The notes under the pieces were generated by a model. The model was not told the origin of the DNA and searched no databases. It saw nothing but the letters and a program-made list of their open reading frames with translations. DNA of 56,140 nt from Macrostomum lignano. Lineage: Eukaryota. The position numbers were made by a program, and so were the translations under genes. Shown one piece after another: positions 722-56,140 of the stretch (the first letter of the stretch is position 1; each line of letters starts with the position of its first letter). Location of the stretch: the NCBI GenBank assembly GCA_002269645.1, contig NIVC01002031.1, positions 1 through 56,140 of the forward strand, given 5' to 3'.

Positions 722-790
<69 letters not shown>
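1..790. repeat. 40-bp minisatellite (TCTGCTCTTATCTTCTCTCTCATCTCTTGTCTCATTTTT[A/C]), ~16 copies, followed by a (CT)n microsatellite
   Basis: The unit is directly visible from ~15 to ~640. (CT)n runs ~722-790. The ORFs here are repeat translations. Confidence 0.95.
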
Positions 791-792
<2 letters not shown>

Positions 793-26720: not shown

Positions 26721-27124
26721 CTCGCTCTGAATTTCACTCAAATCTTACCCTACACAGTCATTCTTACTATATTAAATCAACATCCTTTCGCCAAACGGCA
26801 TATTATCAAAGATGTTTTTACCACCAAACGAATGTTCCCTAGAAATTCAATTTGAAAACGAAAATGTGCTAAATAGGGGCCTGCAGTGCGCAAACACAAG
26901 CTGATGCTGCAACTATTATTTATAACTCGAATAGCAATGGAAAAGCCAAAGTTTTTTACCTACACTATAATTATCTAGAAACATGACTCACCTATCTCAG
27001 TTAGCACCTTTCACCTGTTCTGTCAGTCAGCTTACTGATATCATTGATTCCTTTTGCTTTAACTAACCTTTTTGTAAGTCCCAGTTTTATTAGAAAACAA
27101 TGCTGCTGCCTCAGGCTTTGATTT

Positions 27125-28080: not shown

Positions 28081-28679
28081 GGGACTTACTGGAGGAGAAG
28101 GAGGTTGATAAGACCTAGATTTCACTTGCCAAAATGTTGCAAGCATCTTGGGGCCCTCACTGCATGTGATCGTCACTCGTCAGCTGCTGTTCATTGCTCA
28201 GCGTCAGCATGATGAATGAGTGAGAGAGACGGAACTGAGCAGTCGCATTGAGTGCCATATCCGGCCACTCAGCGATGGCTGCGGTGAACTCTGAGGGAAT
28301 CGGCGGCAACTCAGCCTCCGGGTTTGTGTCCAGTGAAAACAAAATTAATTGCTGCTATTCAGCAAAGCGGCTGCCAAATGGAGACTGGCATCACACTTTC
28401 AGCTTCCCGATGTTGATCTGCGCAACCTGGCAATTTAGGAGACGCGCAAGCGGTTGCACGGAGACAACACAGGACTGCAGATGTTCAAAATTTATTAATA
28501 CTCTTGACTTAGTTGGGTAGTAATGGCGTCATTACTACTCATTTGATTTGCAATATTTTACGAAATTTTATACGTACATGCGTTGGCTTCTACTTGCGGT
28601 AGTGCAGATAGACATATTTTCGTTTTATTTAAAAGCTTCAATACAATGGCTTTGTTGAGCTCAATTTACAGTACACAGT

Positions 28680-29205
28680 ACTGAGGAGAAAGAGGGGAGG
28701 GGAGAGGCGAGAGGAGAAAGGAGAGAGGAGAGAGGAGAGAGGAGAGAGGATAGAGAAGAGAGGAGCGAGGAGCGAGGAGAGAGGATAGAGAAGAGAGGAG
28801 CGAGGAGCGAGGAGAGAGGAGAGAGTAGAGAGGAGCGAGGAGAGAGAAGAGAGTAGAGAGGAGAGAGGAGAGAGGAGAGAGGAGAGAGTAGAGAGGAGAG
28901 GAGAGAGGAGAGAGGAGCGAGGAGCGAGGAGAGAGTAGAGAGGAGAGGAGAGAGGAGAGAGGAGCGAGGAGCGAGGAGCGAGGAGAGAGAAGAGAGTAGA
29001 GAGGAGAGAGGAGAGAGGAGAGAGGAGAGAGTAGAGAGGAGAGGAGAGAGGAGAGAGGAGCGAGGAGCGAGGAGAGAGGAGCGAGGAGAGAGAAGAGAGT
29101 AGAGAGGAGAGAGGAGAGAGGAGAGAGGAGAGAGTAGAAAGGAGAGAGGAGAGAGGAGAGAGGAGAGAAAATAGAGATTGGAGAAAATAGAGATTGGAGA
29201 GAAGA
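28680..29205. repeat. (GGAGA/GGAGCGA)n purine-rich repeat
   Basis: Directly visible. Confidence 0.9.
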
Positions 29206-29994
29206 GTTGAAGGGGTAGGCCAATTCGGATTAGAATAGCAAAGAATACAAATCCTAACTGATTTCAATCAACAGTGCCACATACTACGAAACACCAATTT
29301 TAAAAAAACATCTATCTCCGCTTTTTATAGTTTTCCTTGTTATAAACATTTATAAATTCATACAAGCATTGTGGTACAGCTGATTCGGTTTGATAATTCC
29401 ACTGAAGTTTGATATACCAGTTTATTAGTTATTTACCATCGGACGGAAATATAGTACATCAAAAGATAAAAATATGTTTTGTACATTACGACCTTCGTAT
29501 ACTCCTATTGTTCGTATTCTTATTCGAAATATCACTGGCTTCTGTTTAAATAGTATACATGTACAAGCGCATTCGTTAAGAAGGGAAATGTGCGTCTTGA
29601 AAAAACGAAGTTCTCTTTTTATTTTTCGATATAAACATCTAAAATATGAATATTTTTAGAAATTATAATATTTATAACATTTTGCCACCACTACGGTGCG
29701 AAAACAAAAATAACACTTCACAGGATGAATATAGTTTGAAGAGGACAATAGTCAGCTGCTCAGCCAATGGAAGGCTTTAGCAGTTGCTGCTACGAGTGTA
29801 GGTATTTTAAACAACATCATGTTTACTGTGCAATCTTAGGTTTAAATGTCTGTAATGTGCATGATTTAGTTCCTAATTATACGCAATAGTATTGTCGTGG
29901 ATAATCCGTGGAATTTCTTTCTAATTTCTTTTATATAAAAAGTTTCAATGCAAACAGAGCAGTTTAGGGCTGTTCAATTCGAAGAAATTTCAGC

Positions 29995-32731
29995 ATGGAT
30001 TCTAAATTTTATTTTAGTATTCTCAGTTATCTGTTGGCATTGAATCATTTCCTATCGGTAAGATTCTGGAGAACTTTGTCGCTGTGTCTATCTTACTCAA
30101 CAATTCTATAATTTCTCACTACACTTTCAACAGGTAGTGCAAGCAGCCGGCTACCTGCAGATTAAGTTCAACCGGTACACCAATCATGACGGCCGTGTCG
30201 AGGACGGCAGTCTCTGCGATCCGTTCGGTGCCACCTATGTTGGCGATAATTGCGACCCCGTGTTCCGGCTGAGGGTCAACAAGGGGGGAGGAGGAGGGTG
30301 AGTGAGGGTTTTAATCTGCAGTCCATATTTCCTATTGCTGAGATCAGTTCTGCGTGATTACCACGGCCTCATCTCTCTGCAGCGGAAATCTATACGACTA
30401 TCAGCAACCGGGCGTCTATGACAACCAAAACACCATCGACTTTGGATCAAAGTTCGGCAGCGTCCCGAATCCTGTGCCGATCGCGATGAACTTCCCTAAT
30501 CCGGTAAGACTGTACTCATGAGGGAGAGGAGACTGTACTCACGAACCGCTCTCGGAGCCTTGAGTGATTCTTCATTGTGCATCACAATATTCTAATAAAC
30601 TGTTTGCTACCAAATTTCGCAAACCGCTTTAGGGACACGCGTACGTCAAAGTCGATGTAGTGGACAAAGACACGTTTCCACCAGACGACCCGATGAGCAA
30701 ATTCACCGCCTCGCTGCCTCTCATTGCCGACAATGTCAGGAGAGACATGGAGCTGATCAGTCCGGCTCGACATCACCGACTATCCATAACTCACTGGTTC
30801 ACCTGCTACACGAATTTCTACAGACAGGATTGCAACACCTATTGTGTAGCTCAGAACGACGATGTGAATGGTCATTATACCTGCGACTCGAATGGCAGAA
30901 AAGTGTGCATGATTGGTAAGAGCATCTGGTGATGGCTTGTTTTATTAAACCAAGCAGTAATGCATGACGGAATCGTTTAATCAGAGACTTGCTTGTAACA
31001 AATGAACTGCAGGTTGGACGGGAGCCGACTGTACTCAGCCGGACCCCTGCATCCCGAGTCCGTGTCTCAACGGAGCTACTTGCTCCAATGTCGGAGGAGT
31101 CGCCAGCTGCTCCTGTCCGTCGGGCTTCACTGGTAGCCGATGCGAGACCGATATCGACGAGTGTAAGGCCGTCGAATCGCCCTGTCTGAACAACGCTACA
31201 TGTGAGAACACGATTGGCAGTTTCCGCTGCAAGTGCTCACTCAGCTTCACTGGCGAACGCTGTGAGACCGACGTGAACGAGTGCGAGAGCAAGACGTCAG
31301 TGTGCCTAAACAACAGCACCTGTGAAAATACGTTCGGCGGCTTCAACTGCAGCTGTCCGCCGGGTCTGACTGGGCACCGGTGCGAGCTCGATGTGGACGA
31401 GTGTGCAAACGGGACATCAGCTTGTGCGAACGGTGGTACCTGCGTGAATGTGTTTGGTAATTACACCTGCCAGTGCGACTCTGGATTCACTGGCACACTT
31501 TGCGAAGAAGACGTCGACGAGTGCACAGAGTCGCCATGCGTGAACGGAGGAACATGCGAAAATCGATTCGGAAGCTTCGAGTGCATCTGTCCTTCTGGAT
31601 TTGCTGGAAGAGTGTGTGACAAAGACGAGGACGAGTGCTTGAGGAGTCCTTGCTCGAATGGCGGTAGCTGTGTGAACACCATCGGAAACTTTACTTGTCA
31701 GTGTCCTCCGGGTTTTGAGGGTAGATTCTGCGATGAAGACGTCGACGAATGCCTAATGGCACCTTGCTTCAATGAGAGCACCTGCGTAAACACTATCGGA
31801 AACTTCACCTGTCAGTGCCCCCCGGGATTCGAAGGCAGACTCTGCGATAAAGACGTCGATGAGTGTTCGGAGTCTCCGCCAAAGTGTCGCAACGGCGGAA
31901 ACTGCACGAACACGGTTGGGAGCTTCCGTTGTACCTGCCCGACTGGATTGAACGGAACTCACTGCGAGCAGGACATCGACGAGTGCAAGCTGGCCGCCCC
32001 GCCGTGTCGAAACAACGGAAGCTGTCAGAACAGTTTTGGCGGATTTTCCTGCCGTTGCGGACCAGCGTTTAGAGGCAGACACTGTGAGATTCGCTCTGAG
32101 GCCTCGGTTGGGTCTCCGACTGGTGAAGTCTGGAAGCTTCCTGTTTTCATCGGAATTCCAGTTGCAGCACTCGCCGTTGTCTCCATTGTCATCGTCGTTA
32201 TCTGTAAAAGGAAATCGAGGTAAGAGACGACGAGCTGCAATATCAATTTGGCGAATTGAATTCAACATAAATCTAACCCTGCAGAATGCAATTTATAGCC
32301 TGACATTAAAACGCCATTCCAGTCGCAGAAGCTGCAGTGGTAGCGGGAGCGTCAGAAGCACTGATGCTGCAAGCAATGATTATTATAACACTCATGTCGA
32401 ATTCGGGTAGGTTCAAAAATCTGGTAGTTTCCTCTTCATCAAGTATGGTGGATAGCAAATGTATTGCGCTAAACCATAACTGATCTTCCTTGTTCTTGTC
32501 TGCAGCTCGACTGAAGAGCCAACTAAAGATCCAACTGAAGACCCAACTGAAGACCCAACTGAAGACCCAACTGAAGACCCAACTGAAGACCCAACTGAAG
32601 ACCCAACTGAAGACCCAACTGAAGACCCAACTGAAGACCCAACTGAAGACCCAACTGAAGACGACTACACCATCGCAGACAAAGCGGAGACACTTGAAAA
32701 TGACTATTCAACTATAACCCTATACGAGTAG
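29995..32731 (+). CDS. DSL-family (Delta-like) paralog A: signal peptide, C2/MNNL, DSL, 9 EGF, TM, tail with (TEDP)n
   Basis: Exons 29995-30057, 30134-30297, 30383-30503, 30633-30915, 31013-32219, 32323-32406, 32506-32731, all GT-AG and in phase. DSL: [47 protein letters not shown]2-9 have the Ca-binding DxD/NEC motif. TM: LPVFIGIPVAALAVVSIVIVVIC. Confidence 0.88.
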
Positions 32732-34508
32732 ACTAGTGCCGACTTATATTTATCATTATGTCCATTTGTCACCCAGAACTAAAGTTGTGAAGAAGTTGAG
32801 CGTCTGTTTCGTCTTTTTGTTAGTAGTTTTCTGCGCAGTGTCACTTAAATTTAATGTGGCAACTCAATTACTCAAATTTCTTTTCTTTCTTCGCGGGTTT
32901 TAGCCTCAAGATGGGATGCTACCGTACCAACCCCCTATCTTCATAACCCCTAAAGCACTGGATGTGACATCACCTGATCTTCACAAGCCCTATATATCAT
33001 AACCCTTAATTTTTACAACCCATAAATTTCATAAACCCGAAAGATCATTACTGCAAAATTTCAGAGCAAGCATTTTCGATTCCCCTAATCTTAACTTTTC
33101 TTAAATTTCACATTCATCGTGAGCTATGATATTTCAGGGTTTATAAAATTTGGGGCTTGTGTGGCCCCTCAACGAAGCGATTTGAAATTTTACCTTTGCA
33201 GTAGCAATCGCAATCGAAATATAGTTACCAGATACCTAAGCTAAAGAAATGACAGCTAAGATTGCACTTTGCCTGTGAGAGTATGAGGCTGAAGTCTTAG
33301 GTGCTAGCTATGTATCTATCTTCATCAATTTTGTCTTTAAATTATTTTTGTTCATAATGCTCCTCATTTTATCCGGCATGTAAATATTCATATTTTTGCT
33401 TTGTAATATTCAGATATAAAAATCAGCCTTACCTTCTTCTGCACGGTACTTCTGTACGGCTCTGTAAATACATGTTTGTGGCGGCCACAGAGACGGACGC
33501 GTCATTTGTCTATGGCCACTTCTGATTTGTGCGCCTCTCCTTACAGTTGAGGAGCCCACGGGCTGTGAGAAATAAACTAGAAAAAAATAAATAAGAGATA
33601 TTTCTACGAGGCAATTGTGCCGTCATGGTGCCACAATGCAGTCAAACAAAATCGACACACATACAGTACCAGTGTATAGTCCTTGGGAATGGTTCAAGAT
33701 GCCAAAATCATTGGATGCGGCCAGTCTAGAAGGTAATTTGAATTGGGCACTGGCACCTACGCTAGTGTCATTAAAGGGGTGCCCAAATGTCAGTCTAACC
33801 CGAGAGGGTCAGCCAAAATTTCTCTGCAAAGAAACATTCGCATTGCCGAAGAAATCACATATACCTGGATGGTGATGGATGATTAATAAGTTGAACTCTA
33901 TGGCACATCCAATCAGTGCAAATCATCATTGTGAGGTTTTGGGACATTGTCTTTAGCTTTAATGTACAGCTAGCTATACATATATTGACAATGTTACCTC
34001 GGTATGCTTTGAGCAAAAAGACCAAAGCAGACGATAGAAAGGCAGGTGAATGTGGACAAGAGTTTCCGTCAGAATTAAAAATAGTGCTGCTATTAAAAAG
34101 GGTAAGGAATCTCTAAGATGATTGCAACAAAAAACAGTGTAAATGTAACGCAAAATGAGAAAATCTAACGCGGGGCTTACGCTGCCGAGTTTCTCGTAAA
34201 CTGCAAATGAAGAGTAACTACTTTTTTACTAAGGCAGCGGCCCAAAATATGTGGTTGTGCCGAAGTGAGATTGGTAAAAGATTAAAACGGCATCATAATA
34301 TTTTTGCTCATAACATTCTTGTTTATTCCCATTCAGCCGTCAATAATTCACTTACTCGCATTCTTTCTGCGGTAAAACACAACGGTAGCAATTAAAATAA
34401 CTAGCGATACTAACGTTATTAAAACTGTGCCTTTTAGGATAGTATTCATCGCTCATCCTGAGATCCCGTCTGCACACTCGTCCACATCGAGCTCGCACCG
34501 GTGCCCAG

Positions 34509-35891
34509 TCAGACCCGGCGGACAGCTGCAGTTGAAGCCGCCGAACGTATTTTTACAGGTGCCGTTGTTGACGTCTCGCTCTCGCACTCGTTCACATCGG
34601 TCTCACAGCGGTCGCCAGTGAAGCCGAGTGAGCACTTGCAGTGGAAACTGCCAATCGTGTTCTCACACGTAGCGTTGTTCAGACAGGGCGAGTCGACGGC
34701 CTTGCACTCGTCGATATCGGTCTCGCATCGGCTACCAGTGAAGCTCGACGGACAAGTGCAGCTGGCGACTCCTCCGACATTGGAGCAGGTGGCTCCGTTG
34801 AGACACGGACTCGGGATGCAGGGGTCCGGCTGAGTACAGTCGACTCCCGTCCAACCTGCAGTTCATTTATTTTAGGATTTTTGATTATTAAGGCTGTGTA
34901 CGTTTAATTTGATTTTAGATTCCTATTTTAGTCACGTGAGGTTTGTGATCCAAGGAAAGCTACATAGTAGTTAATGGTCATTCGGTCACGGAACATGTGA
35001 TTGGTATTGCCTACCATTCATAGATTTTAATTTCTTTCGATTGCTTACCTGTCAGGCAAACCTTGGCTCCCTCCGAGCTGCAGTTGTAGTGGCCCTTGAC
35101 TTTGTCATCCTGAGTTACACAGAGCGTGTTGCAGTCAAGTCCGTAGTAGTTTGCATTGCAGTTGTACCAGTACTCCAGAGACAGTTTGTGCTTCGTTGGC
35201 TTTCTGACCAATTTGAGTTTTCTCTTGACTTTGTCGGCTCGAGCCACTAGGGCCGCTGAGAAGGAGTCTATCGGATCGTCCGACGTAACTGGATCCTTGT
35301 CGACCACTGACACCTCAATGTGAATGTATCCCTGCATGAAATTTAGTATTCGTTGCGCGTTCTGTTTCAGGTGCTATCGCGATGAAACTTGTAAGTCAGT
35401 AATTCAGACCTGGCTCATATTACCCTAGATTCAAGTCAAGAAATACTCGTAGTTTTCACTGTCTTGTAGCCATGTACATCTTACGTGGTTCTCAAAGTTC
35501 ATCGCAATAATCACGGGGTTGCTGATCTCTCCGAATTTGCTACCGAAAATGATCGTTTCACTGTCCCAGTACTGATCACGCTGTTGATAGTCGAACAGGT
35601 TATTTCTGCGCGACGCAGTGGGTATTGAGAGCAACGAGCTGGTTGAGCAATGAAGTTGAAGTTTTCACATGAATATACATGGTTAAATGCTGCTCAGAGA
35701 ATTCACCCTCCCGACACGAATCGATCCGCCACGAGTCGGAACTTCGGGTCGCATTTGTTAAAGTGATCGCAGCTGCTCCCGTCCTGACACCGGCTGTCAT
35801 CGTTGATGTAGGACAGAAACCGCAGCGTCATGTAGCCGTTGCCGTTGGCTACCCCTACGCCAGCTAGCAACAGGAGCAGCGAGAGATTCAT
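34509..35891 (-). pseudogene. DSL-family paralog B, truncated: signal peptide, C2, DSL, 2 EGF, then a frameshift (pseudogene or secreted form)
   Basis: Exons (minus): 35891-35707, 35605-35485, 35331-35049, 34855 onward. A 10-nt deletion in EGF3 (~34570) gives ...[20 protein letters not shown] with the stop at 34511-34509. EGF homology ends ~34450 and no TM exon was found. Confidence 0.8.
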
Positions 35892-36399
35892 AGTGGAGAA
35901 TTATTTTTCGATTACTTTCTATACTAAGAATTTATGCAACTTTTTTCGCTTCAGTCCTGGAGAAGTGGCTTCAGCCTATTTCAACACTTTAGGTGTTAAT
36001 ATTGGCAGATTTTTCTGCTTAACTTAAAAAATTTTCGCTTTTTTATTTCTGTTAATTTCAACTGTGCTTCGCATTGCTTAAATTGGCACTGAAATTTCGT
36101 TTGTAGCCGTTTCAAATTTTCAAAATCATGTCTAATAATCGTCGGCAGACAGCGATATTCAGATTGATCGATAATTTCTGCCTGCTATTTCTGTATTTAT
36201 AAGCTTCAATTTTAGATTTCGTACTAGCAATCAGCGACCGCTGTTGGGGAGCCAACAAAGAATGAAATAATTTTTTCCAATAAAATGCATGTTGTTTCTG
36301 ACCTCCCGGTCTTGACATCTCAGCGTACGAATATACTTAGGGATTTAATTTTCATATAAAGATTCAGTCATAATTTGAAGGCTTGGATGGTGAGGCCTT

Positions 36400-39836: not shown

Positions 39837-42800
39837 ATGATTTTACAGCTACTCTTGTTGCTAACTGGCGCAAGCGTCGTCAATAGCAACGGCTACATGA
39901 CGCTGCGGTTTCTGTCCTACATCAACCATGACAGCCGGTGTCAGGACGGGACATACTGCGATCCCTTCGGCCTCACGTACGTCGGAGACAAGTGCGACCC
40001 GCAACTTAGACTGATGGCCGACCGATCTGTGCCTGGAGGGTAAGTTTACTGAGCAGTTTTAAAGTAGCAGCTCATTTCAACCATATTATTTAAACAAACA
40101 AACAAAAAATCACCCACTGATTTCGTACAGAAACGGCCTGTTCGACTATCAGCAGCTGGGTGTCTACTGGGACACGGAGACCATCAATTTCGGAAGCCGA
40201 TTCGGAGAAATCAGCAATCCTGTGATCATCGCGATGAACTTTCAAAACCACGTAAGATACGCTCACAAGTTTTGTTGGAAAGTCGGCAAAAAGGACATTA
40301 TTCTAGATAAATATTGAGTTAGCAGATGGGCAGATGTGCAACCGATAGCTCAGCCGCAGCTCAAGGCTGCGTACGGCTGTTCATTCCAAGGAATGGGGGT
40401 CGCTGGCACCCATTTTACAGTTGGGTGAACTGAAGCAATGCAGAGTTAAGTGTCTTGCTCAAGGACACAAATTGTTCCAGTGGGCTTTGACCTTGACCTT
40501 TAAATTGACCTTTAAGTCGACAGTCCGACGCTCTAAACTCTAGGCTACACCCCCTCTCTGCTACACCCCCTCTCTGCTAGGCTACACCCCCTCTCTGCTA
40601 GGCTACACCCCCTCTCTGCTAGGCTACACCACCTCTCTGCTAGGCTACACCCCTCTCTGCTAGGCTACACCACCTCTCTGCTAGGCTACACCCCCTCTCT
40701 GCTAGGCTACACCCCCTCTCTCTGCTAGGCTACACCCCCTCTCTACTAGGTTACACCCCCCTCTCTACTAGGTTACACCCCCCTCTCTGCTAGGCTACAA
40801 CCCCTCTCTGCTAGGTTACACCACCTCTCTGCTAGGCTACAACCCCAATAAAAAAACGAGCAGAAACTAAAGCTACGAGCGTAAAACAAAAAATAAAACA
40901 GAAGCTAAAAAGAGCTGATTCCCAGCCTCATTCGGGTCTCATCACAGTCCTTAGTCACGTCGAGGCAGACGCGTATTTAATAAAGCAAATCCCCCAATCC
41001 ACACCAAATATTATCCAGGGGCATATTTACGTCACAGTATTGGCGGTAGACAAGGATCCCACTCCCCCGGACGATCCAATGGACACATTCTCAGCGGCGC
41101 TGGTGGCTCGAGCCGACAAAGTCAAGAGAAGAGTCGAAATGCTCAGTCAGCCAACAAACCACAAACTGTCCACTGAGTACTGGTACAGCTGCCATGCAAA
41201 CTACTACGGACTTGACTGCAACACGTTCTGCCAACCTCAGAATGACAACGTCAGGGGCCACTACAGCTGCAGCTCGGAGGGAGCTATGATGTGCTTCACA
41301 GGTACACAGCAATCATTTTATATAATTTCCAATAGTTTTTTATATTAATGTGAACTAAAAAGACAATTCGTCATCGAAAAATAAAATAAATGAACTGCAG
41401 GTTGGACGGGAGTCGACTGTACTCAGCCGGACCCCTGCATCCCGAGTCCGTGTCTCAACGGAGCCACCTGCTCCAATGTCGGAGGAGTCGCCAGCTGCAC
41501 CTGTCCGTCGGGCTTCACTGGTAGCCGATGCGACACCGATATCGACGAGTGCAAGGCCGTCGACTCGCCCTGTCTGAACAACGCTACATGTGAGAACACG
41601 ATTGGCAGTTTCCACTGCAAGTGCTCACTCGGCTTCACTGGCGAACGCTGTGAGACCGATGTGAACGAGTGCGACAGCGAGACGTCAGTGTGTCTCAACC
41701 ATGGTACCTGTGAAAATACGTTCGGCGGCTTCAACTGCAGCTGTCCGCCGGGTCTGACTGGGCACCGGTGCGAGCTCGATGTGGACGAGTGTGCAAACGG
41801 GACATCAACTTGTGCGAACGGTGGTACCTGCGTGAATGTGTTTGGTAATTACACCTGCCAGTGCGACTCCGGATTCACTGGACCACTTTGCGAAGAAGAC
41901 GTCGACGAGTGCGCAGAGTCGCCATGCGTGAACGGAGGAACATGCGAGAATCGATTCGGAAGCTTCAAGTGCATCTGTCCTTCTGGATTTGCTGGAAGAG
42001 TGTGTGACAAAGACGAGGACGAGTGCCTGAGGAGTCCTTGCTCGAATGGCGGTAGCTGTGTGAACACCTTCGGAAACTTTACTTGTTTGTGTTCGGCAGG
42101 TTTTACTGGCAGTTTGTGCGATGAAGATATCGACGAATGCCTAATGGCACCTTGCTTCAATGAGAGCACCTGCGTAAACACTATCGGGAACTTCACCTGT
42201 CAGTGTCCTCCGGGGTTCGAAGGCAGACTCTGCGATGAAGACGTCGACGAATGCTCGGAGTCTCCGCCAAAGTGCCGCAACGGCGGAAACTGCACGAACA
42301 CGCTTGGGAGCTTCCGTTGTACCTGCCCGACTGGACTGACCGGACCTCACTGCGAGCAGGACATCGACGAGTGCAAGCTGGCCGCCCCGACGTGTCGAAA
42401 CAACGGAAGCTGTCAGAACAGCTTTGGCGGATTTTCCTACCGTTGCGGACCAGAGTTTAGAGGCAGACGCTGTGAGATTCGCGCTGAGGCCTCGGTTGGG
42501 TCAACGACTGAGGAGCCCTCGAAACTTCTCGTTTATATTCTAATTGGAGTTGGAGTACTCCTAATTGGCGCTATTTCTGTTGCTGTTGGCATTGCTGTCT
42601 ACAGAATTAGAAGAAGGTAAAAACAATTTCAATCACTTATGAAAATAAATTTCATCACAAATCGTGCTGATGGGATTGCATTTACTAAATCACCCGCAGC
42701 GGCAGAAGCAATATCTCTGGAGCTGAGAACAATGAGACCGTATCTGACTGCGCTGCTATCGAACAGGGGTAAGGAAAATATTTCTGCAACTTTCTTCTTT

Positions 42801-42914
42801 CGGGAATCCGAATGTTGACTGAGATAGATTTTTTTAAAATTATTCTATTCTACTTTCAGGCTGAGTAACCCTGCCTACATGAGCACTGCAGAGATCGGCT
42901 TGCAAGAAAACTAA
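39837..42914 (+). CDS. DSL-family paralog C: signal peptide, C2, DSL, 9 EGF, TM, lysine-free tail with NPAY
   Basis: Exons 39837-40039, 40131-40251, 41019-41301, 41401-42616, 42700-42768, 42860-42914, all in phase. DSL: [46 protein letters not shown]: LLVYILIGVGVLLIGAISVAVGIAVY. Confidence 0.88.
40330..40546 (-). mobile_element. Internally deleted CORE-type SINE (copy 2) in intron 2 of paralog C
   Basis: Shares GGCTGCGTACGGCTGTT, GGCACCCATTTTACA and GGACACAAATTGTTCC with copy 1. Confidence 0.7.
40540..40845. repeat. ~21-bp TAGGCTACACCCCCTCTCTGC minisatellite
   Basis: Directly visible. It starts at the 5' end of the SINE. Confidence 0.9.
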
Positions 42915-43436
42915 CAAAATTCTTGCCAATTGCGTGTCTAGGTGTAACCTGCCTGTTACCTTGCATGTTGCTAATGCTGAAGAAGACGTTGATATGAAGA
43001 CGTAGCCATGTAGCATGTAAATTTCTGCATCCAGAGGCCATTCCTAAATGGCAGATGCGTTCAAACTTTTCTATATACTGAACTTTTGATCATACTAGAA
43101 TATTCGGAGCTACATGGCTACATTAAAACTTACGCAGCTTTTTAAGTATGTACACCTGTAAATTTAATATTTTTAATGTTTTAATGTTTTAATCGCATCG
43201 TTTTAAACATTTCCCAAAGTTTTCAATCTTTATTCTGTCTGTAAAGCTTTAACACGAACGAGTTTTAAAGGCGAAAGGAAGTATAAGTTCGCTGTCATCT
43301 TGCCCTCTTGGTTCACTAATCCTTGCAACTACGGGTGGAATTCCAACTGCAGCAGGGGCTTTAGCACCAGGTGGCGAGGGGCCTCATACAGTTGTTGCCA
43401 GCCAGTTAGAGGAGCCATGGTTCCCTTTGCCTGATT

Positions 43437-43480
43437 GACTGACTGACTGACTGACTGACTGACTGACTGACTGACTGACT
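43437..43480. repeat. (TGAC)n microsatellite
   Basis: Directly visible. Confidence 0.9.
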
Positions 43481-44456
43481 TGTTGATTAAATTCATCGAA
43501 GCTCAATACCATTTTAGTCTTTAATTAAACAGAAAAATAACCGAACTCATTTTGAAATAAAGCACTTGGAACCAAAATGAGAAGAAATAATAAGATGGGA
43601 TAGCTAAGTTATGAATTAGTGACTTTTTTAATTTTAGCTCGTAATATTTTTGGTGATTATTTTCTGTTGAAATTAAATTAAAATCTAAAGTCCTTAAAGA
43701 GCATATGATTTCGGAGGAAAGAATACAGAAAGAAAAAATCAGAAAAACAAAGTGGAGAGAAAGTTATAAAAGGCAGCTTTCCGCAAATTTCAAAAGAAAT
43801 TCCGCAAGCTACTTTAAAAAAACATCGCACCTGCATCTTTAACAATTTGTACATAGTATAATTGCGTACATTACAGTAGCTATTTGATAAAAATAGGATA
43901 ACTGTTAATGATCCAGTATAGCAACTCGTACTAAAAATGAGTTCGTCTGTTTATTTAAGTACTAAAACTCATATTCACGCGGCAATGAAAGCTTATGCAG
44001 GAATACAGAATTTCTCACTTCGTCAAATACTTGTCAAGCATGACATTAAAATAGCGAAAGAGTAAATCCTAATAACCGATTTTACTCACCTGGGCCACAT
44101 TATACAAAACAGCTATTTTTTGAAGAAACAACTTTCATTGTTTCTTAATGTTAGCCGATGCGAATATTTATTTGTTACGCTTTGCATATTATTTAAATAT
44201 CCCAGGTTTCTATTCAGAAGAGAGTTATTGTTTATCCCAAGCTGCATTCGTAAAAATAGAATATGATGCTTCAAAAGCAAACCCTCTCTTTAATCTTTCT
44301 AGTTGGCTGTACGCATCCAAGTACTATGGACTCGCTGCAGTCCTCGGCAGACTTTCTGTTTACTAATTTGATATAAATATTTTCTTGAAATTCTACAAAA
44401 GCTTTTGTGCCCCCGAGTTGCAATAACAATGAACACTTGACAGGGTTCATTTACAG

Positions 44457-44620
44457 CAGGGTTCGGCAAAATTTGCCTCGCGGGCCCCATGCGACCCGCC
44501 AAGCCTCTCTATCCGGCCCGGGTCCTTTGAAAGGTTTGTGTCTCTTCTCAGCTCTCTTCTCTGTAATCTTGTCTCTCCTCTTTGGCCCGCAGCCATTATG
44601 GTAAGAAGTTTGCCCACCCC
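44457..44620. mobile_element. Short hAT-like MITE
   Basis: The left end CAGGGTTCGGCAAA and the degenerate right end TTTGCCCACCCC resemble hAT termini. The interior has GGCCCG motifs. The right terminus is incomplete and no TSD was confirmed. Confidence 0.5.
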
Positions 44621-44838
44621 AAATTATACAGCCTGAGGACAATAGATGTTTTATATTTAGAAATGTTGCGCAATGTGCAATGTGTCTGACGTACTTAGTT
44701 CCTTATTAATGTCTCACATCTATGGGTATTGCCGTGGATAATCCGTGGAATTTCCTTTCAAAGCAGCGCCAAATGCATATAAAATTTGAATACATAAAAA
44801 GGCATTTTAGGCGGCTGCTCAATTCGAAAAACCTCACC

Positions 44839-46568
44839 ATGACTTCTAAATTGTCTTTCGGAATTTGCAGTTGTCTGTTGGGATTGACTCATTTCCTATC
44901 GGTAAGGTTCTTGAGAACTATGACGTTGCGTCTAGCTCACTTGAATTCTATAATTTCTCACTACACGTTCAACAGGCAGTTCAGGGAGCTGGCTACCTGC
45001 AGATCAGGTTCAACCGGTACACCAATCACGAAGGCCGTGTCGAGGACGGCAGTCTCTGCGACCCGTTCGGTGCCACCTATGTTGGCGATAATTGCGACCC
45101 CGTGTTCCGGCTGAGGGTCAACAAGGGGGGAGAAGGAGGGTTAGTGAGGGTTTCAATCTGCAGTCCATATTTCTTACAGCTGAGATAAGTTTTGCATGGC
45201 CTCATCTCTCTGCAGCGGTAATCTGCACGACTATCAGCAACCGGGCGTCTATGACAACCAAAATACCATCGACTTTGGATCAAAGTTCGGCAGCGTCCCG
45301 AATCCTGTGCCGATCGCGATGAACTTCCCTAATCCAGTAAGGCTGTACTCACGAACCGCTCTCAGAGCCCTTGAGTGATTCTTCATTCTGCAGCACAATA
45401 TTCTAATAAACTGTTTGCTACCAAATTTCGCAAACCGCTTTAGGGACACGCGTACGTCAAAGTCGATGTAGTGGACAAAGACACGTTTCCACCAGACGAC
45501 CCGATGAGCAAATTCACCGCCTCGCTGCCTCTCATTGCCGACAATGTCAGGAGAGACATGGAGCTGACCAGTCCGGCTCGACATCACCGACTATCCATGA
45601 CTCACTGGTTCACCTGCTACACGAATTTCTACGGACAGGATTGCAACACCTATTGTGTAGCTCAGAACGACGATGTGAATGGTCATTATACCTGCGACTC
45701 GAATGGCAGAAGAGTGTGCATGATTGGTAAGAGCGTCTGGTGATGGCTTGTTCTATTACAGCAAGCAGTAATTCAGAACGGAGTTCTTTACGTCTGTGTT
45801 GCAGGATTTACTGGCACTCTGTGCAATGAAGATATCGACGAGTGCCTGATGTCGTCACCTTGCTCCAATGAGAGCACTTGTGTGAACACTATCGGAAACT
45901 TCAAGTGCATGTGTCCTCCGGGGTTCGAAGGCAGACTCTGCGATGAAGATATCAACGAGTGCTCGGAGTCTCCACCAAAGTGTCGCAACGGCGGAAACTG
46001 TACGAACACGGTTGGGAGCTTCCGTTGTACCTGCCCGACTGGACTGACGGGACGTCACTGCGAGCAGGACATCGACGAGTGCAAGCTGGCCGCCCCGCCG
46101 TGTCGAAACAACGGAAGCTGTCAGAACAGCTTTGGCGGATTTTCCTGCCGTTGCGGACCAGCGTTTAGAGGCAGACGCTGTGAGATTCGCGCTGAGGCCT
46201 CGGTTGGGTCTCCGACTGAGGCTCTCTGGAAACTGCCAGTAATCATCGTCTCAGCAGTCTTGGGGACAGCGATTATCGCTGTCATAATTGCGCTTGTTGT
46301 CTATCAAAGAAGGAATAGGTAAGTGCATATTGATAGAGGAAGCTGACTACAGAAGTGCTAGTAAATACGGTGTTTGCTATAGATTGAATTTATTGATTAA
46401 ATGGCTGCAAAACATATTTTCAGTAGCAGAGGCACTGCTGGCTACGAGGATAATGAGAGCAGGTAAGAATGTGTCAGTTGTTGCATTCCGGAGTCTATAA
46501 GTTTGACCATTGCTCTTCTATAAATGAATTTCAATTCCAGATTCGATAACGAAGCATACGCAGCATAA
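44839..46568 (+). CDS. DSL-family paralog D: signal peptide, C2, DSL, only 3 EGF, TM, lysine-free tail with FDNEAY
   Basis: Exons 44839-44901, 44976-45139, 45216-45336, 45444-45726, 45805-46318, 46424-46462, 46541-46568, all in phase. The 5' half is nearly identical to paralog A. Confidence 0.86.
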
Positions 46569-47332
46569 CTGCTCTGAGTTGAACGCTTAACAGGACTGCT
46601 ATGTAACCTGTGGATTAAACGTTTGTACAAGGATTTTCGTGCTTGACATACATAATTAAAATTAAATCCTCTTAGGTAATGAAGTCAATGACTAGGAAAT
46701 GTCCCTTGCCAATGTCCTCCGGAGTTCGAAGATATTTATTCATCAGATATATACCAGTAAATTTCATAAATTTCGGTGGAGGCATTTGCACTTGCATGCT
46801 ACGCCATGTACATATGCTTGCTCCGAATCTTCTATGTAGATGCACCATGTAACAACATCATCATTTAAATCTAGCGTACTGTACACGAGTATTAAGCATT
46901 GTTGCATTGTCCTGCAAAAATTTGCCATTTTCTGTTGTTTGGAGTGAAACGATTTGGTCGCTTGTAAAGACAAATTTTACTTAAAAAAACAACTTAAAAA
47001 TAAAGCAAATTTTAAATACGTTTTGCTGATATATTAAAAGTGCCACACTGCTTTCTTGTCGCTCGTACCAGATTTTTAACAGAGGTGCTTTAAATAATTC
47101 ACTAGACTAGAGCATCAAAATTTTGAAACATTTTTTTAAACTTTTACTTAAATCTAATAATTAAGGTTTTATATATGTATAGCATTTTCAATTCAGTTGA
47201 ATATTTCATCGTGCGCGAATGTCTAGCTCTATTTAACTATTATACATATCCACATTTCAATGTTGCATTTGTTACACCGTCTCCTAATCCATATTACTCG
47301 TAAATATAATGCGGAGGTTATATTCGGTTAGG

Positions 47333-47660
47333 GTCACTGAATCAATCCCAAGGTCACTGATAGTTCAGTCACTGAATGAATTCCAAGATCAGTGATAGTT
47401 CAGTCACTGAATGAGTAATAAGGTCACTGATGTTAGTTCAGTCACTGAATGAATCTCAAGGTCACTGATAGCTCAGTCACTGAATGAATCTCAAGGTCAC
47501 TGATAGCTCAGTCACTGAATGAATCTCAAGGTCACTGATAGTTCAGTCACTGAATGAATCCCAAGGTCACTGATGTTAGTTCAGTCACTGAATGAATCCC
47601 AAGGTCACTGATAGCTCAGTCACATGAGTCTCAAGGTCACTGATAGCTCAGTCACATGAC
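47333..47660. repeat. ~35-bp AAGGTCACTGATAGTTCAGTCACTGAATGAATCTC minisatellite
   Basis: Directly visible. Confidence 0.88.
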
Positions 47661-47689
47661 GCACATGATGCACTACCCACTATTTCACA

Positions 47690-47983
47690 TGATGACTCAG
47701 TATGGGTTCTGGCTAAGTTCACGGCTGAAAGGTCGGGGGTTCGATTCTCGACCCACACGGAACAATTTGTGTCCTTGAGAAAGACACTTAACTCTGCATT
47801 GCTTCAGTTCACACAGCCGTAAAATTGGTGCCACCATTGGCTGGGGTAATTGAGGGTAGATATCGTATGTAAGTGGCGCCCCCCCCAGTCTTTGGAATGA
47901 ACAGCCGTACGCAGCCTTCAGATGCGCTGCGCAATAGCTGCGGCTGAGATGTCGGTTGCACATCTGCCTATTCGGGCGGGTGT
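47690..47983 (+). mobile_element. tRNA-derived CORE-type SINE (copy 3)
   Basis: B-box GGTTCGATTCT, then TGTGTCCTTGAGAAAGACACTTAACTC...TTGCTTCAGT...GTAAAATTGG (MIR/CORE-like). It is the reverse complement of copy 1. Confidence 0.75.
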
Positions 47984-48674
47984 CATCAATTACTAATTAT
48001 TATTATGCATTTGGGTCCGTAGTCATAGTTTTTTAATTGTGTATTAACTCTATTTTCTAGATATAAAATAATTATCAGGATGCAATAAGTACATAGCGTA
48101 AAGTACATAGATTTGCATTATTTGCATCACAAATTTACTTACCTAGCTAATTTTAATTAGCAGCAGACGACTCAGTAAACAACTAAATATATCCGTTGGA
48201 TTTAAATTATAAACCAGGCTTTAATTTATTTTCTCACAAGTCCGAAATAAGGAAACTGATCTGTATGAAATAAATTGTATCAAAAAAGATTTCTTATCAA
48301 TACTCGTAAATGTCGTCAAGATACTACAATGTACTAGGATAAAGGTGGTCTGACGCATCCATTGCATCCATGATCAACGTTGTGATTACCTTGTACATTA
48401 GAAATTTGGGAAGTTATTAATTTATCATTGTTCGATTAGCTATACAGAAAAATAAAGCAGATTTTTAATACTAGAATATTTAGATGGATAAGTGTACCAA
48501 TTTATAGCAAAATACGTTTTCACATGATATACAAAGTGGGTTGCATTTACAGGGATGCTTATTAATACTGGAATAAGTTGAGAATATGCCAGCAGAGTCT
48601 CGAGTTCAGAAAAAAGTCGCAATTGGTCAAAAACCTGAGATCAGGTGTAGCCTTCTCTGAGGCAGCTGGCGACA

Positions 48675-51600
48675 TCAATACCTCATCGGTTTGAATGTAG
48701 AATCGCTGTCAATGTAAAAGGTGACGCTTCGAGTCGACAAATTACCTTCGATTACTAAATCAAAGAAATCAATGCTTACTCCGTATTATATGTATGATTG
48801 TCCACCATATCTGGCTCGACTGTACTGCCTCGACGGGACCTGCTAATCACGGAGTTGAGAAAGTTAGGTTTATCTGTTTACGGCCTCAAAGAATGTTAAC
48901 AGAATGTTCAGTGTTAATACCTGACTGCCTGTGAAATACGTTCGCTGTTCGTGATGCCGGCGACAGTCAGTATGAACGCTACGATCAGAATGACACCACC
49001 GACAGTTGCTAAGGCAATGATGAGGGTCTGCTGATTCGGCTCCGCAGGTTTCTCTGCTGTCTCGCAAAGTCGTCCGCTGAATCCATCGGGACACTGGCAT
49101 CTGTAGCTGCCAAATTCGTTCACGCAGGTGCTGCCGCTCGCGCAGTCGGACTTGCCCTCGCACTCGTCTACATCGATCTCGCATCGGCTGCCTGTTAATC
49201 CCACGGCACAGATGCAGTTGAATCCGCCGAAGGTGTTCAGGCAGGTGCCGCCGATGCCGCAAGGTGAGGCCGATATCTCGCACTCGTCAGCGTCTGCCTC
49301 GCAGCGACTGCCGACAAAGTTTCCTGGACAGAGACAACTGAACCCGCCGAATGTGTTTTGACAAGTGCCTCCGTTCAGACACAGCGAAGTCCCATTCTCA
49401 CACTCATTCACATCTGCCTCACAACGGGCGCCTGTGAAGTTTGGCGGACAACTGCAGTTGAATGCACCGAATGTGTTCAGACAGGTGCCTCCATTATGAC
49501 ACGGGGAAGTGCCTGAATCACACTCGTTCACGTCCCAGCCGCAGAGGCTTCCAGTAAAGCCCGAAGGACAGTTGCAGTTGAATCCGCCAAAGGTGTTAAT
49601 ACAGGTACCTCCGTTCAGACAGAGTGAAGTTCCTGTGTCGCACTCGTCCACGTCAGTCTCACAAAGACTGCCATTAAAGTTTGGGGGACAACTGCAGTTG
49701 AATGCACCGAATTTGTTTAGACAGGTGCCTCCATTCTGACACGGGAAAGTGCCTGAATCACACTCGTTCACGTCCGAGCCGCAGAGGCTGCCAGTAAAAC
49801 CCGAAGGACAGTTGCAGTTGAATCCGCCAAAGGTGTTAATACACGTACCTCCGTTCAGACAGAGTGAGGTTCCTGTGTCGCACTCGTTCACGTCAGTCTC
49901 ACAAAGACTGCCATTAAAGTTCGGCGGGCAGCTGCAGTTGAATCCGCCAAAAGTGTTGATGCAGGTGCCATTGTTCTGGCACGGTGGAATGTCTAGAGCG
50001 CATTCGTTCAGATCCTCACAACGACTGCCAGTAGAGTTTTCCGGGCAGACACAATCGAATCCTCCATAGGTGTTTAGGCACGTTCCTCCATTCGAGCAGG
50101 TCGGCAGATCAAGTTCGCATTCGTTGACATCCGTCTCGCAGCGGCTTCCGTTGAAGTTTGGCGTGCAGGTGCAGTTGGCAATGTCGCCGACATTGGAACA
50201 GGTGCCTCCGTTGTAGCACGGGCTTTCGAGACACGGAATCAGTCGGGTGCAGTTGGTGCCCATCCAGTCTGTAAACGTATTACAATTAAAAATGCAAACA
50301 TTTCAGCAGCAGTCAACAAACTAAAAGACACATATTAGTAGTGACCTCGAAGCTCACCTGACATGCAAACTTTGTTGCCATTAGAATCGCAGGTATAGTG
50401 GCCTGTAGAGTCATTGCGAGGCTTGCAAAGTGTGTTACAGTCCAGTCCGTAGTAATGGCTGTGGCAGGTGTACCAATAGGTAATTGATAGCCTGTGGTGC
50501 CTCGGAGAACTGTAGATGTCCATGTTTCTCCTTACTGAGTCAGCCCGAGCCGGTAGACTTGCGTAGAAATGGTCCATATGGTCGTCGTAAAATTCGTCTT
50601 TGTCCATCGCGACAACCGTTATTTGTATGCTGCCCTGTTAATGTTAGAAATGTTGAGATGTGGCGTTCTGGTCACAGATATATTGTACTGTAGGTAGCTA
50701 TACAAACTAAAAGTACTAAGATTGCATACCGGATTCCAGTAGGGCATGTCTATAACGACTGGATTGGCAATTTCACCGAACCTGCCGCCGAAGTTGACAA
50801 TGTCCGAATCCCCATAGTATCCAGCTTGACCGTAGTTAAATAGATTGTTCCTGTGGGCAGGAATTTCGAATGGCAATCGTTAACTCAAGGTAAATTCAAT
50901 AACTCTCCCGCCAAAACTACTAAGTAGAATTAGACTAGTAATCTTAGCCCCCACATGGGTAGACAACGGAAGAAGTAGTAAGATTAAAAACTCTTAGAGA
51001 TTGATCTCTAATCCTTGGCAGCTCAGAATTCCCCCTTGAGCCAGTGAAATCCTAATAAATTCTTCACGGAAATCCCTAGGGAATGCCTTAGGAATGCCTT
51101 GGGAATCTCAGCATTCTACATTTATCGATGGCATTTCAGCAATTCCAGCGTAGTCTTAGCAACCCCCCCCCCCCAAAAAATGAGCTATATAATCTCAGCA
51201 AAATATCGAGGCACAGCTAAATTTTTTCAATCCACAATTATTAAACAAAGCATCCCATATTATTTAATCTACAGTGCTTGTTGGTTTAGTTGCCAAAAAC
51301 AAATTCAAACAGGGTCTTTTTAACATTACACCGATGGATGGATGGTTAGCATGTCTGTCGGATTGCTGTAGGGAGCGAAAGCACAAGCAGAACTTATTAA
51401 TCTACCGTGAACATCTCTTTCTAAAGGCCCTCGTCAGCAGCAATAATTTACCCTCCGGCGTTGGTCCTGTCAGCAAAGAGTTGGAATTTCGGATCGCAGG
51501 CTGACTCTCTCCAGGAAAAGAACGTGTCGCAGTACGTCCCGTCCGAGGCTCTGCTGTCATGATTATAGTAGGTGTGGAATTGTACATGCATGGACCCAGT

Positions 51601-53772: not shown

Positions 53773-54128
53773 TCCAGCGCGCGCTGGACCAGGCCAAGAA
53801 CCTTCGTGCGCATCGTGAGCGGGCCCGCGCTTCTCGCGCTCCACCCAACAGCCAGAAGGCCAGACTCTAAGCGGGAGGCTCCGACCGACTGGTTCGAGTC
53901 TGTGACTCACCAGGAGGCTGGCGCCACCCGCATCGACCTGACCGACGAGGCAGAGGGGACGGGCAGTGACAGCACCGAAGCACGCAGGGAGGCGACGGTA
54001 ACGTCCACGCTGGGCTCACGCCGCGGAGGACTCCACAGCCACCCTAACTGCTGAGGACGCTGAAACTCCCATGGAGGTCTGCGGGTCACCCACCACTGAA
54101 AAGGAGGAGGATGACCTGCTCAACGATT

Positions 54129-56140
54129 CCCAACTGCGTGATAATGATCAGCGACCAAGGAATCCATTGCCTGCAGATTAATCTGCAGCACTGCGTCGCA
54201 GCCTCGGTCAACCTTATGCGTTACGCCGAGCTCGACAAGCCGGGGCTCATCCTCGTCCAGGACCCCTGGACTCTCAGAGGTAAGCCTCAGAACGCCCCTG
54301 CTGGCTACAATTGTTTTTATACTTGCCCTCGCGAGGCCAACCAGCCTCCCAGAGCTTGCATCTTTGCGAGCAAAACGCTCAGTGCGTGGCTCAGATCGGA
54401 CCTGTCCAACAGGGACATCTGCGTCATCCAATCCGAGGACCTTCTTCCTGGGAAGACCACCCTCATTGCCTCGGTTTACCTACCAGGCGATGCTGCGGTC
54501 GTCCCCAGAGCCCTCGCTACGCTGGTAGAGCTCTGCTCTGCCAAAAACTACGAGCTCATGGTTGCCGGCGACATCAACGCCCACCACACTCACTGGGGCA
54601 GCACTGGCATTAATCAGAGAGGCGAAGACCTCCTAGCCTACGTTGCCTCTACGACCCTCGAGTTCTGCAACTCTGGTCCACCCCTACCTTTGACAACGGA
54701 CGGTGGTCGGAGGTGATCGACGCTACGCTCGCAACGCCCAGACTCTACCAGAGTATTGGAGCGTGGCGGTGCTTCCAGTGTCCTCACTCTCGATCACAAG
54801 TTCATCTCCTTCAACCTAATGGCCGCGCGTAGCGCAACTCGTGTTACGTGGAGACGGAACGCCAGAAATACGGATTGGGAAACCTTCGGGCTCGCCCTGA
54901 AGGAATTCCATCGGTCTCCTGGCCAACCATCCACGATCACGTCGTGCCGAGAGGCGGATGAGTGCGCGACTGTTTTGACAGAGACGCTAACCGCCGCCTT
55001 TGAGGCGTCCTGCCCTTTAAAAGCCTATAAAGGGAAAAATCGGCGCCGTGGTGGAATCCCGAGCTCGGCAACCTCCGTCGCAGGGCTAAGAGACTCCACC
55101 GCAGAGCAACTAAAACTAAGAGCCCTGCAGACCAAACGCCTATCATGAAGCAATTCATGAGTTTAAAAGGAGGTTAGGAATGCAAAGGCTCAAAAATGGC
55201 GACAATACTGTGAGGAGCTAGAGGGCTCACGCCCCACCTCCAGAGTTGTGAAAGCGCTCACGCTGGACAAAATGTCTAAGCTCTCCTCGGTCAAACGCAC
55301 CGACGGTACGTCCACGGACAACCCAGGGGAAACGCTTGATGTAATGCTCACTGCGTTTTTCCCCAACGAGCCAGCTAACCAGACCACTCCGGATCACTCG
55401 GAGGGAGGTCACGCGCTGGCTGCCTCTATCATCACGGAGGACCGCATTGTGAGAGCGGCAAATTCCTTCAAGCCTTTCAAAGCCAGGACCCGACGGCATT
55501 GTACCGGCCCTTCTAAGAGAGGCGGTTAAATGCCCAGGCTTCCTGCGCAAACTTTGCAGCCTTCTTCGGGCATGCATCACGCTTGGTTATGTCCCACAGG
55601 CTTGGACCGAGGCAAAGGTGATCTTTATCCCTAAGCCAGGCCGCTCGGACTACCATTCTATCAAATCCTTCAGACCGATCAGCTTGACCTCCTCCCTGGT
55701 CAAGCTGATGGAGAGACTGGTGCTTTGGCGCCTTCTCTCTGTTGAGCTGAAGAACAAACCTCTCAGCGAGAACCAGCACGCTTTTCGGGCGGGTCGCTCC
55801 ACTGAAAGCGCGCTGCACGTCCTGGTCGATAAACTCGAGAAGCCGTGCTTGGTAATGGCTTTGCTCTGGGGATCTTCCTGGATATCATTGGCGCCTTCGA
55901 TAACGTCCTCTTTGAGGCGTTCCGAAGAGCTCTTTGTGAGAGGCAAACGCACTCACATCTCACCAGATGGATCATGTACATGATCAGCCATCGCACGGCC
56001 ACCGCCAGTCTGCTGGGCTACCAGAGGACGGTCCCCGTCTGCAAAGGTAGCCCGCAAGGTGGGGTGCTGTCTCCAGTTCTCTGGAATATGGTCATCGATG
56101 AGCTCCTCCGGGATGTTCGGCCTGACCCATTCTGAAAGTT
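54129..56140 (+). pseudogene. Retrotransposon ORF2 (AP endonuclease and reverse transcriptase), frameshifted, incomplete at the window end
   Basis: Motifs are spread over ORFs 54111-54716, 54756-55148, 55248-55529, 55618-55983 and 55845-56135 in different frames. Confidence 0.85.

Follow-up and report, generated by a model that had tools for sequence, protein, structure and literature searches.

Central to Notch biology are the questions of how endocytosis of a ligand makes the activating force and whether ubiquitylation is intrinsically required; until now the evidence has been obtained with fly ligands altered by design, namely Delta with its lysines changed to arginine and Delta carrying the NPxY signal of the LDL receptor. 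K-free Delta keeps partial activity (PMC5675594). A lysine-less Delta with an LDL-receptor NPxY tail (Dl-LDL+) is internalised at a moderate rate in Drosophila by way of its NPxY and induces Wingless, without lateral inhibition (PMC3241720). This precedent, cited in an initial annotation of the locus described here, is real, with signalling in part only. Here we analyse contig NIVC01002031.1 of Macrostomum lignano (assembly GCA_002269645.1, Mlig_3_7), the whole 56,140 bp of which we call the window, and which holds five tandem Delta-like genes, A to E, found by open-frame scans and hand splicing, each of the intact ones encoding a DSL domain, EGF repeats, a transmembrane helix and a cytoplasmic tail. 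The initial annotation had seen lysine-free or lysine-poor tails that keep an NxxY motif and had proposed natural ubiquitin-independent Notch ligands, or else inhibitory decoys. We think it somewhat likelier than the alternatives taken together, at roughly 55%, that these genes belong to a widespread, non-canonical subfamily of invertebrate DSL proteins whose tails carry a sorting or endocytic signal of the type recognised by PTB adaptors.

Several described systems share features with these proteins. Like canonical Delta, Serrate and Jagged, they have the topology of type I membrane proteins, in which an N-terminal module, a DSL domain and tandem EGF repeats precede a transmembrane helix and a cytoplasmic tail; unlike them, they have tails of 26-107 residues rather than about 120-215, little lysine where canonical tails have 7-8%, an FxNxxY motif, mostly calcium-binding EGF repeats, and an MNNL module that Pfam does not detect. 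Draper, CED-1 and MEGF10 are EGF-repeat type I receptors in which a tail NPxY recruits the PTB adaptor GULP/Ced-6. The combination of an EGF-rich ectodomain with an NPxY-type tail is shared with that family, and one Nematostella relative has been auto-named 'protein draper', but Draper, CED-1 and MEGF10 have EMI/Nimrod-type N-termini and no DSL domain, which the present proteins do have. Vertebrate DLL3 is likewise a divergent DSL ligand, described in PMC2171428 as not activating Notch in trans and as attenuating it cell-autonomously; the statement that its tail is lysine-less comes from the initial annotation. DLL3 is a vertebrate paralogue, no orthology is implied, and lysine-lessness is not kept even between M. 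lignano duplicates. Ligands of the Numb PTB domain, such as LNX1 (NPAY) and LNX2 (NPAF), form a class in which Phe can replace Tyr and recognition is independent of phosphotyrosine (PMC7373230). The LSNPAY of gene C, and LDNPAY and LDNPTY in an Oscarella Delta-like protein, resemble them, but complete Numb is reported to be specific to bilaterians (PMC2770060) and the motif is also found in sponge and cnidarian proteins. The LDL-receptor signal FxNPxY places Phe at -5, Asn at -3 and Tyr at 0 in a short tail, as do the proteins described here (FDNEAY in D, FDNPVY in the LDL receptor), although the Pro at -2 is not conserved in the Delta-like subfamily; and where the Dl-LDL+ chimera was engineered (Wang and Struhl 2004), these proteins are natural. 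By their tail motifs, LDLR-type cargo is what these ligands would seem to resemble most.

By domain content, A, C, D and E are DSL-family ligands, as the initial annotation had held. Pfam DSL (PF01414) scores 51.8 bits in C, 61.5 in E, 49.4 in D and 42.2 in P0036, another Delta-like protein of M. lignano, against a cut-off of 24.2. In the intact proteins a signal peptide leads into a divergent, MNNL-like N-terminal region of some 165 residues, after which come the DSL domain, 3-10 EGF repeats (Pfam matches EGF or EGF_CA three times in D, 8-9 times in C and E), a transmembrane helix and the short tail, and in A, C, D and E a hydrophobic segment of about 23 residues is followed by a basic stop-transfer sequence. 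The N-terminal region aligns with the same region of mollusc and echinoderm Delta-like proteins, and a profile made from such regions retrieves DSL proteins, some of which (P0121, for example) are annotated with the MNNL family PF07657.

We rebuilt the gene models of A, C, D and E by hand from the open-frame scans. Every intron placed in the Delta-like genes has GT-AG ends and a pyrimidine-rich acceptor, and the spliced tails and their coordinates came out as first annotated. The tails of C (RIRRSGRSNISGAENNETVSDCAAIEQGLSNPAYMSTAEIGLQEN, 45 residues) and D (QRRNSSRGTAGYEDNESRFDNEAYAA, 26 residues) have no lysine, and that of E, on the minus strand, has one; each is encoded from the end of the transmembrane exon through the two following exons (Table 1). 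The tail of A has four lysines and reads KRKSSRR, then ASNDYYNT, then a PTKD unit and a (PTED)n block, and finally LENDYSTITLYE, the C-terminal stretch after PTKD(PTED)n being ADKAETLENDYSTITLYE; it contains both SNDYY and NDYSTI. The PTED block is a tandem repeat of 11 units (CCAACTGAAGAC). The initial annotation had called the four tails dissimilar except for NxxY. All four do keep NxxY, but the dissimilarity was overstated: each is built from a transmembrane exon ending in phase 2, a small Ser/Arg-rich exon also in phase 2, and a terminal exon, and each starts basic and then turns Ser/Arg-rich, so that the tails are paralogous rather than independent.

The whole cluster occurs a second time, on NIVC01001731.1 (locus L001), as A'-B'-C'-D'-E' with about 92-97% nucleotide identity, and large duplicated blocks of at least 95% identity have been described in the DV1 genome of M. 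lignano (PMC5730564). In A' (L001, about 5560-5700) the repeat has one PTED unit fewer and its start reads PTKEPTED. GenBank models of this assembly derive from genome-guided assembly of RNA-seq transcripts (PMC5730564), and these RNA-derived models share the tail exons of D, C (in part), C', D' and A'. P0007 (BOX15_Mlig022047g1, on this contig) is identical to our model of D, tail included; the GenBank model of C is 3'-partial, with 621 residues and an end at 42739, and it uses the 42616/42700 junction, since its length fits only with that junction; the annotated genes in L001 end at 12833 (C') and 17150 (D'), which are the stops of the spliced tails, and A' ends at its predicted stop. The transcript evidence thus agrees with the predicted tail exons in these five genes, while E and E' are without a transcript model, and the tail of E is a prediction from genomic sequence. 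The donor that follows the transmembrane exon reads AG/GTAA or AG/GTATTAA, so that in A, C, D and E alike translation into the unspliced intron would meet a stop in frame by the first or second codon. A retained intron would give a tail-less ligand ending in RIRRR, QRRNR, KRKSR or AVRY, and UniProt A0A1I8FHT9 (P0002), an A-like model, ends at the retained intron in such a form.

Within M. lignano, C, D, E and P0036 carry the motif [FLIVMY]xNxx[YF]. In C it is L-S-N-P-A-Y, an NPxY with Leu at -5, and in D it is F-D-N-E-A-Y, with Phe, Asn and Tyr in place and no Pro; A has only the looser A-S-N-D-Y-Y, with no hydrophobic residue at -5. Two further Delta-like proteins of this species carry motifs of the same kind, P0257 (ENPVY) and P0278 (DNPVY). 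The NxxY lies in the penultimate exon in A and E and in the last exon in C and D, and MAFFT places all of them in one column; P0036 has both a TNEIY and a LENSAY, which suggests that two copies of the motif may have been ancestral.

The motif extends far beyond this species. DSL-containing matches to C include mollusc and echinoderm proteins named 'fibropellin-1-like' or 'delta-like', with short tails in which we find FENQLY, FDNVLY, FENILY, TNPVY, INPAY and VNPVF, whereas the canonical Deltas among the same matches (with NEQNAV, IKNTWDK and ATEV) are without such a motif, and canonical Delta and Jagged tails mostly lack it. When a profile of the MNNL-DSL region, containing no tail residues, was run against 1.84 billion representatives it retrieved 150 proteins, and many of their tails carry an FxNxxY-type motif. 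The 30 representatives whose source was looked up include bivalves, gastropods, nemerteans, the brachiopod Lingula, the annelids Capitella and Owenia, crinoids, Nematostella, Exaiptasia, a medusozoan, and the sponges Oscarella and Oopsacas. For A, C, E and P0036, blastp with the N-terminal region gave motif-bearing bivalve and nemertean proteins as the top matches, and the first Delta with a canonical end stood at rank 32 or lower; because the N-terminal regions are closest to those of motif-bearing proteins, ectodomain and tail define the same subfamily.

Chance does not account for these motifs. [FLIVMY]xNxx[YF] occurs in 38 of 52 non-canonical tails, where 500 shuffles averaged 4.6 and never exceeded 10, and NPx[YF] occurs in 16 of the 52 where 1.6 are expected. 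When every gapped pair of residues was scored without bias, N..Y came out on top, in 35 of 47 tails where 9.3 are expected (z = 10.5), with F....Y and F.N next; the consensus reads (S/G/A)-F-(D/E)-N-x-(L/A/I/V)-Y-x-(E/D). Conservation of NxxY in related species is thus broader than the initial annotation had realised. Judged from these tails, the NxxY of M. lignano appears to be an ancient and strongly conserved FxNxxY signal of the LDL-receptor/PTB-ligand type, present from sponges to echinoderms.

Could the conserved Asn instead be read by Mind bomb? The motif might be a docking site for the MZM domain, as a relative or ancestor of the Mib1 N-box, and the ligands would then be ordinary E3-dependent ones. 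A central Asn is pivotal in the Mib1 N-box, being N1124 in JAG1 and N684 in Delta (PMC11887331), and Asn is the sole invariant tail column in the alignment of M. lignano paralogues; moreover, Mindbomb is reported from non-bilaterians, while complete Numb and Neuralized are reported to be specific to bilaterians (PMC2770060), and the motif, too, occurs in sponges. The residues around the Asn point elsewhere. An aromatic residue at N+3 and Phe at N-2 are enriched as much as the Asn itself, and the position three after a hydrophobic-x-N is Tyr or Phe in 39 cases in the subfamily, whereas in canonical tails it is mostly Asp, Thr, Asn or Leu. C and D offer no tail lysine as a substrate for Mib1, and no second site resembling the C-box is evident in the 26-residue tail of D. 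On balance we consider docking of Mind bomb unlikely.

A hydrophobic residue five before the Tyr together with Asn at -3 is also the Shc-type consensus. The tails fit it, and acidic residues often follow the Tyr, so one might picture a hydrophobic-x-N-P-x-pY site that docks a Shc- or IRS-type PTB domain or an SH2 domain and serves reverse signalling into the cell that bears the ligand, not endocytosis. The PTB domain of SHC binds the NPAY of LNX1 only when it is phosphorylated, while that of Numb binds it without phosphorylation (PMC7373230). Phe stands in place of Tyr in 9 of 43 motif instances, a replacement that Dab/Numb-type PTB domains accept and phosphotyrosine readers do not. Because of this replacement and of the phosphorylation-independent binding of LNX1, we favour a PTB reader of the Dab, Numb, ARH or GULP type, or a FERM reader of the SNX17 type, and regard a phosphotyrosine site as quite improbable.

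In its strong form, the initial annotation would have these proteins be either Notch ligands that are obligately independent of ubiquitin or cis-inhibitory decoys like DLL3, with lysines selectively purged and NxxY replacing the Mib/Neur-ubiquitin-epsin route. C and D do lack tail lysines and E has one; P0036 has none in 78 residues (P = 0.01) and P0257 one in 126. In the M. lignano tails taken together, 5 of 295 residues are lysine, where relatives have 5.7% (P about 0.004 if the repeat block is left out). Past the first 12 tail residues, lysine makes up 4.0% in the subfamily against 7.4% in canonical Delta and Jagged tails, and canonical tails in the same searches have 7.9% overall. The strongest lysine-free case seen in the family is P0206 of Haliotis rubra (XP_046542316.1), with a repetitive tail of 257 residues with no lysine that ends in DENPYVHLVVINR; its counterpart in H. 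asinina, P0202, has 3 lysines in 205 residues. In the tails of A, C, D, E and P0036, which hold 0-4 lysines, we found no NxxN/NEQN-type Neuralized motif, no IKNTW-like Mib1 N-box and no ATEV/xxIV PDZ-binding end, and the partial activity of K-free Delta and of Dl-LDL+ also speaks for this version.

The absence of lysine is nevertheless neither conserved nor unusual. C' (P0001), which is complete and 95% identical to C, has ENNKT where C has ENNET, and D' has EDKES where D has EDNES; since the two copies each carry one lysine, at different positions, lysine is evidently tolerated in these tails, and A has four. Family tails average 5.7% lysine and only 3 of 52 are lysine-free, most motif-bearing relatives having several. 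At 5.7%, the probability of finding no lysine is 0.07 for the length of C and 0.22 for that of D; it rises to 0.32 and 0.52 when lysine is taken at the 2-2.7% that the proteins have outside their tails, and against this background the depletion in M. lignano tails vanishes. An excess of tail lysine poverty over the organism's general bias for Arg over Lys could not be shown. The subfamily is relatively lysine-poor, not lysine-free; that C and D have no tail lysine follows from their tails being very short and rich in Arg, in proteins that hold little lysine anyway, and is not a selected trait. We find the strong form very doubtful.

It is also possible that the cluster, recently duplicated and partly decaying, has tails in which NxxY and the lack of lysine are inherited noise. 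Gene B has signal/MNNL-like, DSL and first EGF exons followed by a frameshift near 34512, has no transmembrane segment or tail, and is probably a pseudogene; because B' (L001 7314-8638, minus strand) is truncated identically, the truncation is older than the duplication of the locus. Gene D has about seven EGF repeats fewer than A and C, in agreement with its transcript-based GenBank model: at the 45726/45805 junction between exons 4 and 5 the end of the DSL domain (CMIG) is joined straight to the FTGTLC of a later EGF repeat, which leaves both the Cys pattern and the frame intact. Between the two loci, introns and exons are similar to about the same degree, and the D tail region is only about 79% identical in nucleotides, a divergence about as high as that of introns; with 4 substitutions in the tail of C and 7 in that of D, the loci differ too little for a test of selection. 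The lack of transcript models for E and E', and the loss of the Tyr in E', would also fit decay. Yet transcripts with undisturbed reading frames are made from C, D, C', D' and A', and the C-terminal motif is kept in C/C', D/D', P0036 and distant phyla far beyond chance. LSNPAY is identical in C and C', and D' keeps FDNEAY with one synonymous change (TTC to TTT) amid 5 replacements in the other 20 or so tail codons; of the duplicate comparisons, this last alone hints at constraint. We hold the absence of any function to be highly improbable.

An adaptor-type signal in a DSL subfamily is the reading we prefer, and a number of observations weigh against it. Recognition by PTB domains often depends on a Pro at N+1, which 12 of 43 motif instances have, about a quarter, while D has NEAY. 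The C-terminal copy in A is an NDY, one residue short. Retention of NxxY, which holds for C/C' and D/D', fails in the third pair, where the VDNHTY of E, the sole copy in that gene, is VDNHTN in E', its Tyr replaced by Asn; neither gene has an annotated transcript on NIVC01002031.1 (E) or in L001 (E'). The sample of tails was drawn by heuristic detection of transmembrane segments and tails from database gene models of uneven quality. A Pfam scan of the Delta-like proteins of the window did not detect MNNL (PF07657). The DSL stretch equivalent to the canonical RPRDD reads KPRND in E, QPQND in C and VAQND in A, and because it has diverged in C and A, binding of Notch by these ligands is not assured.

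We infer adaptor binding, endocytosis and Notch signalling by these ligands from sequence comparison, and speculate that they would work as follows. A PTB- or FERM-type adaptor, with Dab, ARH, Numb, GULP/Ced-6 and SNX17 as candidates, would bind the unphosphorylated FxNxxY and couple the ligand to clathrin-mediated internalisation, to recycling, or to both, and this coupling would set the surface level and polarity of the ligand. If Notch is engaged, the motif might supply the endocytic pull that Mib/Neur, ubiquitin and epsin give to canonical ligands. By analogy with Dl-LDL+ and K-free Delta, which are partly active, motif-driven and ubiquitin-independent signalling by natural ligands is plausible. 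One could go further and suppose that FxNxxY was the ancestral metazoan device for ubiquitin-independent endocytosis of Delta, through PTB-type clathrin adaptors, and was later replaced, or remodelled into the Mib1 N-box, in canonical bilaterian Delta and Serrate. All recovered M. lignano Delta-like tails have a motif of this type and almost no lysine, but we offer this idea tentatively and lean against it. Evolutionary surveys record expansions of Delta-like genes without treating tail motifs (PMC2770060, PMC8166818), and a literature search, which as an incomplete one is weak evidence, returned no paper on a conserved natural FxNxxY or NPxY in the tails of DSL ligands. What is new is apparently the conserved pairing, across many phyla, of a known ligand family with a known motif class.

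The coordinates of the Delta-like genes and of their surroundings are collected in Table 1. The T-box DNA-binding exon places a gene for a T-box transcription factor upstream of the Delta-like cluster, and an exon for the N-terminal part of a Macoilin-family protein lies further out. Between B and C is an intact open reading frame of 711 residues with a Cys/His-rich N-terminus and no Pfam match, which may encode a domesticated or active transposon protein, and near the end of the window is a fragment of a LINE-type retrotransposon with surroundings of 56-61% GC. Long minisatellite arrays give rise to spurious long open reading frames in several frames, for example one of 682 residues made of 'NGPTKLIQ' repeats, and fit the highly repetitive nature of the M. 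lignano genome.

Table 1. Positions of the Delta-like genes, their tail features and neighbouring elements in the window (NIVC01002031.1).
Feature	Position	Strand	Remark
Gene A, Delta-like ligand, 715 residues, 7 coding exons	29995..32731	+	Hand model, GT-AG; annotated duplicate A' ends at predicted stop
Gene A exons	29995-30057, 30134-30297, 30383-30503, 30633-30915, 31013-32219, 32323-32406, 32506-32731	+	Hand model
Gene A, SNDYY	32372-32386	+	
Gene A, PTED repeat	32519-32660		
Gene A, ENDY	32696-32707	+	
Gene A, donor after transmembrane exon	32218-32224		
Gene B, truncated Delta-like copy	34450..35900	-	Open-frame scan; same truncation in B'
Gene C, Delta-like ligand, 648 residues, tail from 42603	39837..42914	+	Hand model; 3'-partial GenBank model; duplicate C'
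Gene C exons	39837-40039, 40131-40251, 41019-41301, 41401-42616, 42700-42768, 42860-42914	+	
Gene C, donor after transmembrane exon	42615-42621		
Gene C, LSNPAY motif, last coding exon	42861..42878	+	Identical in C'
Gene D, short Delta-like ligand, 403 residues, 3 EGF repeats only	44839..46568	+	Hand model, same as GenBank P0007
Gene D exons	44839-44901, 44976-45139, 45216-45336, 45444-45726, 45805-46318, 46424-46462, 46541-46568	+	
Gene D, donor after transmembrane exon	46317-46323		
Gene D, FDNEAY motif, last coding exon	46542..46559	+	Kept in D'
Gene E, Delta-like ligand, 685 residues	48675..51763	-	Hand model, GT-AG; Pfam DSL
Gene E exons	51763-51701, 51609-51452, 50850-50730, 50634-50358, 50268-48921, 48839-48780, 48705-48675	-	
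Gene E, donor after transmembrane exon	48922-48914	-	
Gene E, VDNHTY motif, penultimate coding exon	48788..48805	-	VDNHTN in E'
Minisatellite arrays	1-10400, 16900-17620, 22900-23480, 27100-29270		
Spurious 'NGPTKLIQ' open reading frame	8195-10243		
Macoilin-family exon (N-terminal part)	10365-10733	-	Pfam PF09726, E = 4.7e-44
T-box DNA-binding exon	20568-20969	-	Pfam PF00907, E = 1.7e-42
Open reading frame of 711 residues	37114-39249	-	
LINE-type retrotransposon fragment	54111-55983	+	Endonuclease PF14529, reverse transcriptase PF00078

For the M. lignano genome, the analysis clarifies a five-gene cluster and its copy, corrects the partial models of C and of the A-like gene, and flags B as a probable pseudogene. 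For the Notch field, a large natural clade of DSL proteins with FxNxxY instead of Mib/Neur boxes would provide natural test cases for questions that have so far been put to engineered ligands, and would bear on the age of the endocytic routes. If FxNxxY does prove to be the ancestral device, the Notch ligands of M. lignano would signal naturally without ubiquitylation.

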